Virus record (IMG/VR): IMGVR_UViG_3300034073_003340
Coordinates: 248,001-312,000 of that record
Reading direction: 5' to 3' (one strand)
Length of the DNA stretch: 64,000 nucleotides
In this document: in pieces, positions 39,277 through 53,790 of the stretch
How the letters are laid out: every line of letters starts with the position of its first letter
Position numbering within the stretch: the stretch's first letter is position 1
Translations under genes and position numbers: made by a program
Notes under the pieces: generated by a model
Seen by the model: only the letters and a program-made list of their open reading frames with translations
Told to the model about the DNA's origin: nothing
Databases searched by the model: none

Positions 39277-39660
39277 GTGTCAATGATACACTTTGATACA
39301 TGGAAGTCAATCCTACATAAAGGTGATGCGAAGATAATTAGTTGTCATCGCCATACGGGGACCATCATCTACTATAGGCCCGCTTATACTTTCAATACGA
39401 TCAAATACATAGCCTCCGGCTTTGTCGCAGATTCTCGCGCTCATGATCTTTTTGAGGTCAGCAACGGATAGGTCACTGTCAACTATCATACGAAACATTC
39501 TGATATCGTGATGTTCATTGAACTGTGCCACATGAACATAGATGCCAAACTCTTTGGCCACGACTTCAGTAAAAAGATGATCTTTGGGATATTCACGAAC
39601 ATCGATAATCATACGGACCTCGCAGGTTGCTATCCTACTTATCCGTCGATTGGATAAAGA

Positions 39661-40088
39661 GTTCTTGAGTAGAAAGGCCAGTTTCCCCTATTGATCTGGC
39701 ACCACCCGCAGGGCTCCAAGCAACCTTGATAGTATCTAGGCATTGTTCTACCCAAGCTATGGTGTCTTCTCGAGGAAGAACTCTTCAACCGCGCCGGGGT
39801 TTCCATCCCACCTATCTTTGATAGGATCTATATCATACTATCAACTTACTACTCAAAAATCTCAGTCATACGTCTGGCCTCCACATTACCAGCACCGGCG
39901 TAAAGAGGTATTCAAGACCTCTTGGCCCATCCAGAGCCTCACCTAGAGCACCATGGGTGGCCTCTACGCCCTAAAGAGAATCGAACTCTTTGCCGCTTGA
40001 GGATCTGCCCTTGTTGCCGGCCGAACAACATAACCGCCCATCTACATGGGCTTGGCGTTGAGCAGGGCCACGGCCCCATCATATGACT
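39661..40088 (-). ncRNA. Two tandem orphan structured RNA domains
   Basis: TTGACA-N17-TATGAT promoter; AGTCATATG/CGTATGACT and TTGAGTAG/CTACTCAA closing stems; T-loop-like hairpins. Confidence 0.6.
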
Positions 40089-40155
40089 TCCCTTATCATA
40101 AGATAGGTTTTCAAAGTTGTCAAACTAAATAGGTCATATGATGAGGTAACCCATT

Positions 40156-40881
40156 ATGTTTGTGAGAATCCTATCCATGGTGTCTATCTTCCTGCTTTTT
40201 ACAGGGGATAGCTTACCAGAGATGGGAAAGCTAGGTCAACCCGAGGGAGTGGTAATAGAAACAGTCCCACAACAAATCTTAAACAAGATCGACCCTCCCC
40301 AGTCAAAAATTCTAACCTGGGAACAATATCAAAAAGCTTTGGATTATGGTAAAGTTGCCCTCGAAGATCAATGTCAGGAGCAACCAGAAGCACTATGGTG
40401 CTCTGATCAACCCTTGAAAGAAAAGACATTAACTCCTTGGCAGATTATGAATATTAGTTTGGAAACCAAGGATAACTTTAGATATGTTTCAGACTTAATT
40501 GATATCTGGCGTATTCACAGCTCTTCAGTTATAGATGGAAAAGTCTGGAGAGGTGATTGTGACGATCTTGTGTCAACTACCAATGATATGATGATCAGAA
40601 ATGGACAACCTCGCAACAAGGTCTGGTTTGCCTTAGTGAACGTTTCTAATCGAAAGATATTGGATCATCTTGTAGGAATTGTCGAGGATGCCGACGGTCG
40701 CTATTGGGTAGTGGGTGATACTTCCCAGCAGAATGCTTATCCAATTGAGCATTTGAAATACAAAGTGGTAGCAATAGCGAGAGCCTCGGATGTAAAGGCT
40801 TGGTTTGATCCTAGAGAGGTCAAATTCTTCCCTGTGAGGGTCTTAGAGAACCAACCCAACATAGAAACAGTTGCGCTATAG
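40156..40881 (+). CDS. Transglutaminase-like cysteine protease (BTLCP/LapG-like), secreted
   Basis: Signal-like N-terminus, YVSD..D.W, GDCDD, DHLV, VVGD; TAAATA upstream. Confidence 0.75.
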   Translation: MFVRILSMVSIFLLFTGDSLPEMGKLGQPEGVVIETVPQQILNKIDPPQSKILTWEQYQKALDYGKVALEDQCQEQPEALWCSDQPLKEKTLTPWQIMNISLETKDNFRYVSDLIDIWRIHSSSVIDGKVWRGDCDDLVSTTNDMMIRNGQPRNKVWFALVNVSNRKILDHLVGIVEDADGRYWVVGDTSQQNAYPIEHLKYKVVAIARASDVKAWFDPREVKFFPVRVLENQPNIETVAL

Positions 40882-41229
40882 AAGGAAACGGGGAGGCTCA
40901 GCCTCCCCGTTTTCTACCAACAGACGCCTATTAGACTATCTGCAACCAACCTGCCCAAGAACCTCAAATCCTCAAATTTTCGAAATATACTCTAGACTTC
41001 TATTGGATTTAAAGCTGGTAGACCTTGGAGGCTTCTTTATGGGATCCACAACTTGGTAGCTACTCCTGTGTGAACGGTCGACGGCCAGGCGAATTGGCGA
41101 CTATTAGCAATTTAGTCCAAAGTTTCGCGGCTGGTCCCGTCCCTCCTATATAGAGCTTGTCTTTCTAAGACCCAGCAACAGTCTATTATCGAAAAAGGCT
41201 CATGATATCTAGCTTTGCTTTGCTAGACT

Positions 41230-44006: not shown

Positions 44007-44099
44007 TGGTGGAAGTGCCCGGACTTGAACCGGGATCGTCGCCTAATCTGGGCTTTCGCGAGGTATAAGCTCACCCGCTCTACCTTGAGCTACACTTCC
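44007..44099 (-). tRNA. tRNA-Ile(UAU) with long variable arm
   Basis: GGAAGTG/CACTTCC-ACCA; GTGAG-CTTATAC-CTCGC; GCC/GGC variable stem; 93 nt. Confidence 0.8.
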
Positions 44100-45257: not shown

Positions 45258-45333
45258 TGGTGGCCCATATGGGACTCGAACCCACAACCGACAGATTTTA
45301 GAGATCCCTGCTCTACCATTGAGCTAAAAGGCC
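45258..45333 (-). tRNA. Amber suppressor tRNA (CUA)
   Basis: 76-nt cloverleaf; loop CT-CTA-AA; CCA encoded; one mismatch each in the acceptor and anticodon stems. Confidence 0.8.
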
Positions 45334-51649: not shown

Positions 51650-52505
51650 ATGAAAGGTTGAGAATACACCTTTTACAAAACGTCTTCGAGCATTATCCCT
51701 GGCTTCTGACCAGTTTTCTCTCGATTTCCACTAAGCGTAGCCGAAGCAGTCACTTAGTAACGTTCCAAAGCCGCCAACTTATAGACCGCTGGCATTAGCG
51801 GTGTCCTTACGGGCCTTTCGGTAGTGTCTAGTTACGCCTGGAATCGCTTCCAGTTAAGCGGCCGCTAAGCCACAACATACCCTCTTCTACCAACACTAGT
51901 AGACGTTTGCCCCTACCAGTGTCCCTGTTAGCTTGCGCCCAGGGAATTAGGCTTTTTCAGCCTCGTAAGCGAGTCAGGCTTTCATTTTTTGACAGCTATG
52001 TCTAAAACAGCTATGTTTAACCCATTGCGATGTGCTGACTCAGTAGCTTCAAAGGCTTTTGACCTCCAAAATACTACACACCACGTATCTTTCGCCTTGC
52101 GGGGCTACTTGATCAGTTTTCAAGAACTGTAACACACGGCTGAACCCGTATATTCCAATCCTATCAACTTGCCACTTGCCCTTGGCGCGACCCTCGGACT
52201 GTAGTGACTATCTCTTCCCACTTGGTACTGACCATATTTCGCTGGCGACGTTGGGGTGCGAAACCCATTATCGAGCCATCCGTTGGACCACTCGACGTAT
52301 ACCGCTTTCGCGGAACAGTCATCCTATGGCGTCCTACCTATCTCCGCAACCCGTAAAGGCCCGAAGAGCTATCTTTTGGATAGCAGGGTGAGACTTGCTT
52401 GTTATTGACCTATATTGCTATAGGCGAGACCTATTGGGTTTCAGCCCCTTTCCCTAAGTTGCCCCAGGTTATCTGCTACAAGCAGCAATCTCTAATCTCT
52501 TGAGC
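51650..52505 (-). ncRNA. Large structured ncRNA, GOLLD-like
   Basis: ~855 nt without a credible ORF, between a TTGACA-N17-TACTTT promoter and a terminator at 51620-51649; many GNRA-capped hairpins; GTGGTGTGTAGTATT..CAAAAG and GTGTATTCTCAACC segments recall GOLLD. Confidence 0.7.
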
Positions 52506-52659: not shown

Positions 52660-53790
52660 TTACGCGGCTATTCTTTCTTCAATTCTTTCAGAGAGTTCCA
52701 GAATGGCAGAACGCGCTTCCTCAACTGACATCTGAAACCATTCACCGTTTGGTCCACGCTTTTTAGCAAAAAACTTATGGATCACCTTTTCTGCAAGAGC
52801 TCGATCTAGAAAACCATGATAGAACGCGAATGAGAAGTCACTGTGAGGATTGTGGGTATTGAAAGCCACCAACCGTTGCTGCAGATCCATGGTCTGTCCG
52901 ATCTTCACCCATCCAGGAAACGTAGGTGACGTCACTACATATACAAAGCCACGCTTGTCACTGGATCTACTCTGCACCGTTCGCAGTTTGGGTTGAGCAT
53001 TGCGAAGAGCCTGTTGGAAGGCTTCCTGCTCGGCGACACGCACAGATTCCACTTGTTCTGTATTAGCGTCTTCGTGGGCTAATGAAGCTTTAAGGAAGGG
53101 CCCTACTTTATCCAACAGCGCGGCGCGTATATCAGCATCTGACGTTTTACCACTCTGATATAGTTTGACTATAAATTCTCGTCTGGCTTGGTTGCCTCCT
53201 AACGCTGAATTCAGTCGCTGTATGCTTCTACGACGACGCAGGTTATGTTCTATAACAAGGTTTCGCCAAGTTGCTTGAAAACGCCTCTGGAAACGTATGT
53301 AGGAAACATCCTCTATCTTTTCTTCTTTGTATTCTTGAGAACGAGCTTGGATTACCTTTTCAATCCATTCGGGAACTGACCTCCCGTAAGAAGCAAATAG
53401 ATCTCGAAACCGTTGCTGGCGATTGATCGCCCGTTCGTCGCGCACCTCTCTAGATAGGGGAACAATAGCAGTAGGACGTGATGCTAGAATCTGTCCTACT
53501 TCTAATATGAATTCTTTTCGAACGGCATCCAACACCGTCGGCGCTAGTAATTCACGCTCCCATAATAGAGGTTCACCTAGAAAACCATGATCAACGATCT
53601 TTGAGAACTGATACTTAGTTCCATAGTACATAAGGATATGATCATCAGCATCAGCTCGAGAAATTGTGCCCAGACCAAGATTCTTTCTGATACTGTTGTA
53701 AGTGTTGAAGCAAGAACGAAACTGTTTTTCACATATTGTCCAGCCACCGAATGGCACTACGGCTAACTCAGACTTGTTCTTTTTGCCCAC
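52660..53790 (-). CDS. Protein with C-terminal T5orf172/GIY-YIG domain
   Basis: GFVYVVTSPTFPGWVKIGQT..RL..FNT...AEKVIH...GEWF. Confidence 0.8.
   Translation of the reverse strand: MGKKNKSELAVVPFGGWTICEKQFRSCFNTYNSIRKNLGLGTISRADADDHILMYYGTKYQFSKIVDHGFLGEPLLWERELLAPTVLDAVRKEFILEVGQILASRPTAIVPLSREVRDERAINRQQRFRDLFASYGRSVPEWIEKVIQARSQEYKEEKIEDVSYIRFQRRFQATWRNLVIEHNLRRRRSIQRLNSALGGNQARREFIVKLYQSGKTSDADIRAALLDKVGPFLKASLAHEDANTEQVESVRVAEQEAFQQALRNAQPKLRTVQSRSSDKRGFVYVVTSPTFPGWVKIGQTMDLQQRLVAFNTHNPHSDFSFAFYHGFLDRALAEKVIHKFFAKKRGPNGEWFQMSVEEARSAILELSERIEERIAA

Follow-up and report, generated by a model that had tools for sequence, protein, structure and literature searches.

A modular structured non-coding RNA of jumbo phages without a match in Rfam 15

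The locus and its genomic setting

The DNA analysed here (the window, 64,000 nt) spans bases 248,001-312,000 of IMG/VR record IMGVR_UViG_3300034073_003340, a 435,856-bp phage genome with direct terminal repeats (G000 hereafter). By its large terminase (about 44-46% identity) the phage is a distant relative of the RaK2-like jumbo phages, Alcyoneusvirus and Asteriusvirus. The genome carries 59 tRNA genes, about 55 of which form an island at 292-326 kb that starts 4 kb from the feature under study and contains a GOLLD RNA. The feature is a stretch of about 435 nt on the minus strand, richer in G+C (up to 0.545) and G-rich on that strand, lying between a divergently oriented gene for a 241-aa BTLCP-like peptidase (p241) and a gene encoding a 99-aa protein (p99). 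The peptidase gene is the only plus-strand gene in a long run of minus-strand genes, its start codon lies about 30 nt from the -35 box of the RNA promoter, and no sigma-70-like plus-strand promoter was found for it. The features of the locus, together with others recorded in the same genome, are collected in Table 1.

Table 1. Position of the RNA, its parts and further features (window coordinates unless a G000 coordinate is given)
Feature	Position	Strand	Description
Promoter, sigma-70 type	40095..40123	-	-35 TTGACA at 40123-40118, 17-nt spacer, -10 TATGAT at 40100-40095 (11 of 12 matches); predicted start about 40088
Domain 1 (D1)	39864..40088	-	225 nt; closed by P1 (40088-80 with 39872-64), AGTCATATG/CGTATGACT; 11 helices around a four-way junction formed by P2, P3, P7 and P8
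P6 hairpin	40013..40029	-	GTTGTT-CGGCC-GGCAAC; loop palindrome GGCC (CGGCCG with the closing G), candidate symmetric kissing loop; 3 of 6 pairs with double changes
P7 hairpin	39973..39991	-	T-arm type, AAAGAG-TTCGATT-CTCTTT; 3 of 6 pairs with double changes
P8 hairpin	39959..39970	-	GGC-GTAGAG-GCC, next to the T-arm
P10 hairpin	39903..39923	-	AAGAGGT-CTTGAAT-ACCTCTT, conserved loop CUUG(A/U)A; 4 of 7 pairs with double changes
P11 block	39874..39896	-	GGTG-CTGGT-AATGTGGAG-GCCAG; near-invariant 3' signature of each module
Domain 2 (D2)	39665..39856	-	192 nt; closed by TTGAGTAGTAAG/CTTTCTACTCAA; inner helix TTGATAGTAT/ATACTATCAA (39844-35 with 39735-26)
Linker	39613..39664	-	52 nt to the SD (GAGG) and ATG of p99
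Peptidase gene (p241)	40156-40881	+	BTLCP-like, 241 aa
Second structured stretch	40885-41225	-	Between the 196-aa gene and the 3' end of the peptidase gene; ends in a terminator-like hairpin; conserved loop GTCTAATAGGC
tRNA-Ile(UAU)	44007-44099	-	93 nt
Suppressor-type tRNA	45258-45333	-	Anticodon CUA
GOLLD RNA	51655-52084	-	164 bits against a gathering score of 150; AGATCGAR motifs at 52807 and 51561
T-arm-type hairpins outside ARAGORN-called tRNA genes	43993, 60024, 62406, 62598, 62763, 63229, 63721	-	5 bp plus a TTCRANN loop, within the tRNA island
AGATCGAR motif (examples)	42493, 48167, 50350	-	Possible phage-specific promoter or regulatory motif
rsr (Ro60/Rsr orthologue)	G000:C1:13339-15140 (L155 5339-7141)	-	TROVE and vWA_Ro60 domains
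Group I intron	G000:C1:9999-10215 (L155 2000-2216)	-	85 bits, E = 5.6e-21

A first-pass annotation made from the sequence alone had described the stretch as a promoter-preceded, two-domain structured RNA without a credible ORF, and this observation was confirmed, as every string it named is present at its place. Taken alone the promoter is weak evidence, since the genome has 14 sites of that quality against about 8 in shuffled sequence, and the minimum-free-energy fold of the single sequence is no better than shuffles (z = -1.0). A scan against Rfam 15, one of the checks proposed with the annotation, returned no family at gathering score and only a chance snoRNA hit at E = 4 in a permissive scan. 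The only GOLLD hit in the window is the copy at 51655-52084, and the GOLLD model gave nothing at E ≤ 10 in 39400-40300 nor at E ≤ 0.1 in three homologous contigs (L022, L024 and L025), the ROOL model (RF03087) likewise did not match, and no intron or ribozyme model matched, although the same search detected the genuine group I intron elsewhere in the genome. Literature searches found no description of this RNA.

Other features of the neighbourhood deserve mention. The second conserved structured non-coding stretch has 48 alifold pairs, 29 of them compensatory, and no Rfam match, and a wastewater strain carries 12 substitutions at 40952-41029. The suppressor-type tRNA and the tRNA-Ile(UAU) are found as the same pair in the homologous contig L021, but genes here nevertheless read well with code 11. 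The T-arm-type hairpins outside called tRNA genes may be uncalled tRNAs or further tRNA-like RNAs. The AGATCGAR motif occurs 59 times on the minus strand of the genome against 15 on the plus strand, with about 13.5 expected per strand; it sits just upstream of the rsr start here and of the helicase starts in relatives, and after modules D4/D5 there.

Conservation and structure of the RNA

Relatives of the RNA were not recovered by blastn against cultured phages, by exact and degenerate motif scans of IMG/VR, by two motif scans of GTDB genomes, or by single-protein scans of IMG/VR with p241 and p99. DNA and covariance model (CM) searches of the three closest complete relatives by terminase (G001, G002 and G005), of RaK2 and of JNE01 also found nothing. 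The neighbouring peptidase gene proved to be the key, as contigs encoding its homologues carry the same non-coding sequence in the same divergent position: L024 (nhmmer E = 3.5e-87), L021, L022 and L023 (E about 1e-62), L025 (E = 5e-31), L139 (E = 8e-143) and, after a profile search, L148 and L149. One further partial copy, L118, came from a metagenome motif scan in which one of 110 matches was real. The RNA is therefore not an orphan, as the annotation had assumed, but is carried by eight other metagenomic sequences in five further lineages of related jumbo phages. Public runs from subsurface, soil and wastewater hold near-identical strains, and an L139-like variant matches domain 1 at about 93%.

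The existence of covarying homologues, whose absence had been named in advance as a reason to abandon the RNA reading, was examined by fitting covariance models of the two domains to all homologues (scores of 157-254 bits for D1 and 99-230 bits for D2). In D1 (9 sequences, 64 pairs) 94.7% of pair cells are canonical and 31 pairs show changes on both sides, while with the 3' partners slid by 1-3 columns only 42-48% are paired and 3-10 pairs show double changes. In D2 (8 sequences, 51 pairs) 87.9% of cells are canonical and 21 pairs show double changes, against 32-45% paired in the slid controls. For both domains 0 of 500 column shuffles reached these values. The significance comes thus from covariation and not from folding energy, albeit with only 9 sequences in about 6 lineages available. 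G-U pairs outnumber A-C mismatches 58 to 8 in D1 and 18 to 7 in D2, so the minus strand is the RNA and the plus strand was rejected. Between G000 and L024 the RNA is 84.5% identical, while the flanking genes are 66.7% and 74.3% identical. The locus (39313-40881) is moreover mosaic with respect to L022 and L024, the RNA of this genome being closest to L024/L139 (84.5%) and its flanking proteins to L022 (78-83%), which suggests recombination.

A translated small ORF, the other explanation that had been named beforehand as fatal to the RNA reading, received no support. All six frames carry several stops of all three kinds in every homologue, so that stop-codon recoding cannot rescue a frame; the 47-aa and 55-aa ORFs of this genome are truncated or absent in the relatives, and variable columns are spread evenly over codon positions (23/29/23 and 35/31/32). 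The promoter, by contrast, gains weight from comparison, as the -35 box TTGAC(A/G) sits at the same place in 8 of the 9 homologues, followed by a 17-nt spacer of free sequence, a TA-rich hexamer (TATGAT only here; TATAAA, TATAGA, TACAAA, TAAAAC and TAATAA elsewhere) and a fixed distance to helix P1. No TTGAC was found upstream of D1 in L149. That the stretch is not a functional RNA but a decayed gene, a DNA-level palindromic element or chance could be argued from the z-score and from the absence in this genome of the DEAD-box helicase and the 162-aa gene that precede p99 in G001, G002 and G005; however, no tblastn trace of those genes is found in the region, there is a single copy per genome, and the strong covariation with its strand-specific G-U pairs already contradicts this reading, which we consider very improbable.

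In D1, P2 and P3 lead into a long arm (P4, the variable P5 and P6), P3 runs directly into P7, and P7 is followed by P8, closing the four-way junction, after which come P9, P10 and the P11 block, invariant in 9 sequences. Of the stems proposed by the annotation, the D1 closing helix, the T-arm hairpin, the AAGAGG...CCTCTT hairpin (better drawn as 7 bp with loop CTTGAAT), the D2 closing helix TTGAGTAG/CTACTCAA (12 bp) and the D2 inner helix (10 bp) all carry compensatory changes. GCCCAT/ATGGGC (P5) is a variable hairpin, absent from three homologues and only 72% paired. GGCGTA/TACGCC exists in this sequence but is not kept in relatives, where GGC pairs locally with GCC (P8) and covaries GGC/GCC, GGA/TCC, GAC/GTC, and that stem was therefore rejected. 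D2 further contains a variable hairpin, a multi-branch core and two 3' hairpins; a GCCT/AGGT hairpin drawn there by RNAalifold was rejected in favour of the 10-bp helix, which covaries.

Hairpin P7 is an exact tRNA T-arm, with the G53-C61 closing pair and a UUCRANY loop. Its G-C closing pair is invariant and its loop is identical to that of the phage's own tRNA-Asp; among homologues the loop is TTCGATT, TTCAATT or TGCGATT, with L149 deviating (TTCGACA). This part of the D1 model hits tRNA T-arms weakly (about 10 bits, E about 0.6). The T-arm is most simply a T-loop tertiary module. The annotation's suggestion of a tRNA-elbow mimic, or a role as partner of tRNA-recognising factors, is possible but untested: the second hairpin loop, CUUG(A/U)A, does not fit one T-loop register across the homologues, a D-loop partner was not examined, and the order of arms around the junction (P2, P3 arm, T-arm, P8) is not that of a tRNA or of YrlA. 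Neither ARAGORN nor the Rfam tRNA and tmRNA models recognised a cloverleaf, and there are no acceptor-like stems and no CCA.

The T-arm also raises the possibility that the RNA is a Y-RNA-like partner of the phage's own Ro60/Rsr protein, the closing stem binding Rsr and the T-arm module mimicking a tRNA as in bacterial YrlA, since the genome encodes a Ro60 orthologue and no Rfam Y RNA was found within 6-7 kb of rsr on either side. Nevertheless, the RNA lies 273 kb from rsr (287.7-288.1 kb and about 13.3-15.1 kb of the genome, respectively), whereas YrlA genes lie within 4 kb on the same strand (PMC4201824). The Rsr-site motif GNCGAAN0-1G is absent from D1-D2 of every homologue but L025 (it is lacking in G000, L024, L139, L022, L021 and L118), the arm order T, AS, D is not present, and the size is 4-10 times that of Y RNAs. 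Binding to Rsr was not assayed. A better candidate for a Y-like or other large RNA is the ORF-poor 900-nt stretch upstream of rsr (L155 7600-8496), which holds four CUUCGG-type hairpins and gave no Rfam hit, and we consider the Y-RNA reading of the present RNA unlikely.

Additional modules and palindromic loops in relatives

After D2, L024, L139, L025, L148 and L149 continue for 500-670 nt of conserved non-coding sequence and L021/L022 for 300 nt, giving totals of about 730 to 1075 nt. This stretch folds into further self-closed modules (D3-D5), with 75 alifold pairs, 30 of them with compensatory changes. The D1 model matches D4 of L149 at 25 bits (E = 6.6e-8) and D3 weakly, the D2 model touches D5 of L021, and blocks related to P11 recur in D2-D5 of relatives; the modules are therefore paralogous. 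The two-domain form described by the annotation is a shortened version of a 3-5-module RNA found in relatives, and D3-D5 were not found anywhere in this genome. By inspection, the short gaps of apparently RNA-less loci (L027, L150-L154) and of relatives without p241 (L018-L020) appear to hold one to several modules of the same design upstream of the helicase promoter, L020 (G005) having about 1 kb of them, including a T-arm hairpin (GGGG-TTCAATT-CCCC) and GGCC-loop hairpins. This rests on eye and a weak nhmmer signal, and no significant CM or nhmmer hit backs it for most of those loci. The D5-type module, which on inspection appears to recur most widely in the clade, is lacking here, and the short form could therefore be a partly disabled remnant.

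No intrinsic terminator lies between D2 and the SD or ATG of p99, so in this genome the RNA may be the 5' part of the p99 message, and L024 and L022 also have p99 directly after the RNA. A cis-acting 5' leader regulating p99 or its operon is nonetheless disfavoured by the changing downstream gene, which is p99 in three lineages and a helicase with its own promoter in others. In L025, L148 and L149 the RNA is followed by a hairpin, a separate TTGACT promoter and a helicase gene, and L139 shows the same hairpin and promoter before its contig ends; p99 lies 2 kb further on in L025 and beyond the helicase in L149. Closer terminase relatives have p99 behind the 162-aa gene with no such leader, no alternative-pairing expression platform was seen, and five self-closed modules over 0.4-1.1 kb are unlike any known leader. 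We regard this reading as unlikely. As for a transcript, which had also been named as a requirement, there is no evidence: the only run labelled as RNA-seq holds a contig that also spans the promoter and is flagged as probably DNA, and was uninformative. An alternative is a precursor cut into separate small RNAs, one per module, like a tRNA array. Each module is closed by its own terminal helix, linkers are only 6-10 nt, module number varies freely between phages, T-arm-type hairpins are present and the tRNA island is nearby, but in the absence of processing data and of the tRNA hallmarks sought above this remains possible yet doubtful.

The repeated 3' hairpins with A/G-rich loops (AUGUGGA, AUGAGGA, GGGGAAA), one per module and the best-conserved block of each, might suggest a protein sponge or scaffold, in which they would be repeated binding sites for one protein in the way CsrB/RsmZ bind CsrA. 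There is about one GGA-loop hairpin per module and GGA is missing in the D1 loop of L139 and L022, observations that do not settle whether the RNA is of the CsrB/RsmZ type. The rest of the structure is far more elaborate than a sponge needs and no partner protein was identified, and the support for this reading is weak.

The apical loop of P6 carries GGCC in eight sequences and GAUC in L025 (AUGAUCA, with the palindrome UGAUCA), over a covarying stem, and a D5 hairpin has the tetraloop GGCC in five sequences and GCGC in L021/L022. In each case the other GGCC loops of the same molecule stay unchanged, so self-pairing rather than loop-to-loop pairing within one molecule fits. By rough odds, a random 7-nt loop holds a 6-nt palindrome about 3% of the time and a random tetraloop is palindromic about 6% of the time; each switch is nevertheless a single evolutionary event. 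Kretsch et al. used this very pattern as support for intermolecular kissing loops in OLE L9.3 and GOLLD L21a (PMC12286853).

Interpretation and relation to known phage RNAs

The first-pass interpretation, a new ornate phage ncRNA and perhaps another tRNA-elbow mimic, is partly supported. What the analysis demonstrates is that 40088-39665 on the minus strand is a gene for a structured non-coding RNA made of two independently closed modules and preceded by a positionally conserved sigma-70-type promoter, belonging to a previously uncatalogued family confined, as far as the searches reach, to one clade of environmental jumbo phages, by terminase distant relatives of the RaK2-like phages. Members are strings of 2 to 5 modules of one design, with a closing helix, GGUGC motifs, a 3' hairpin with an A/G-rich loop, GGCC-loop hairpins and T-arm-type hairpins. 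More distant loci of the clade appear, by eye and by a weak nhmmer signal, to hold a single module. The mechanism, on the other hand, is an inference. In this view host RNA polymerase would transcribe the RNA, which would act in trans as a stable folded molecule; D1, built on its four-way junction, would display the T-loop as a tertiary-structure building block and would pair with a second copy of itself through the P6 loop, forming a symmetric kissing dimer, while full-length relatives, having a second self-complementary loop in D5, could form larger homo-oligomers in the manner of OLE, ROOL and GOLLD. We hold this explanation as a whole to be only somewhat more likely than not, and self-association through P6, and through D5 in relatives, to be less likely than not; it rests on the indirect loop signature and neither dimerisation nor quaternary structure was modelled or measured here. 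The biological role is unknown, although the position at the edge of the tRNA island, in a genome that also encodes GOLLD, points to the same still-unsolved biology.

With more than 400 nt, many covarying helices, no ORF and a phage location near tRNA genes, the RNA has the attributes of the large ornate phage RNAs, and we regard it as a new family among them. GOLLD (RF02032) is likewise a large, ornate, phage-encoded RNA of unknown function near tRNA islands, with a variable and a conserved part and loop palindromes that switch while staying palindromic, and a copy lies 12 kb away; the architecture here is however a string of self-closed paralogous modules whose number varies from 1 to 5. ROOL is a phage or prophage ornate RNA near tRNA genes whose assembly uses kissing loops (PMC12286853), but no pseudoknot-rich single fold is evident here, and taxonomic range and size differ. 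In OLE, L9.3 switches GGCC to GAUC or AGCU in a symmetric kissing loop of a homodimer (PMC12286853), the same GGCC/GATC alternation as in P6, yet OLE is a bacterial (Bacillota) RNA with protein partners, unrelated in sequence, structure and context. YrlA shares a closing stem plus a module with a tRNA-type T-arm. Stable RNAs C and D of phage T4 are non-coding RNAs of unknown function of about 120-140 nt, single units encoded with the tRNA cluster of a T4-type phage, and no comparison with them was run.

A more far-reaching possibility, which we consider less likely than not but which is not excluded, is a new class of self-assembling RNA built from a variable number (1-5) of paralogous, self-closed modules, each protomer carrying one or two self-complementary kissing loops (P6 in D1 and a tetraloop hairpin in D5). 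The two-module RNA of this genome would then form a dimer and the five-module relatives chains, rings or cages, and it would be a third, independently evolved phage RNA architecture beside GOLLD and ROOL, with natural truncation variants that dissect the assembly.

Large ornate phage RNAs such as GOLLD and ROOL are among the least understood abundant RNAs, their nanocage structures having been solved in 2025 while their function is still unknown. The present family offers natural one-, two-, four- and five-module variants for structure-function work, and the short 435-nt form is a convenient size for cryo-EM, SHAPE and dimerisation assays. Unrelated to GOLLD and ROOL but sitting in the same genomic niche, coexisting with GOLLD in one genome and showing the same palindromic-loop signature, a further family of this sort would show whether this biology is general.
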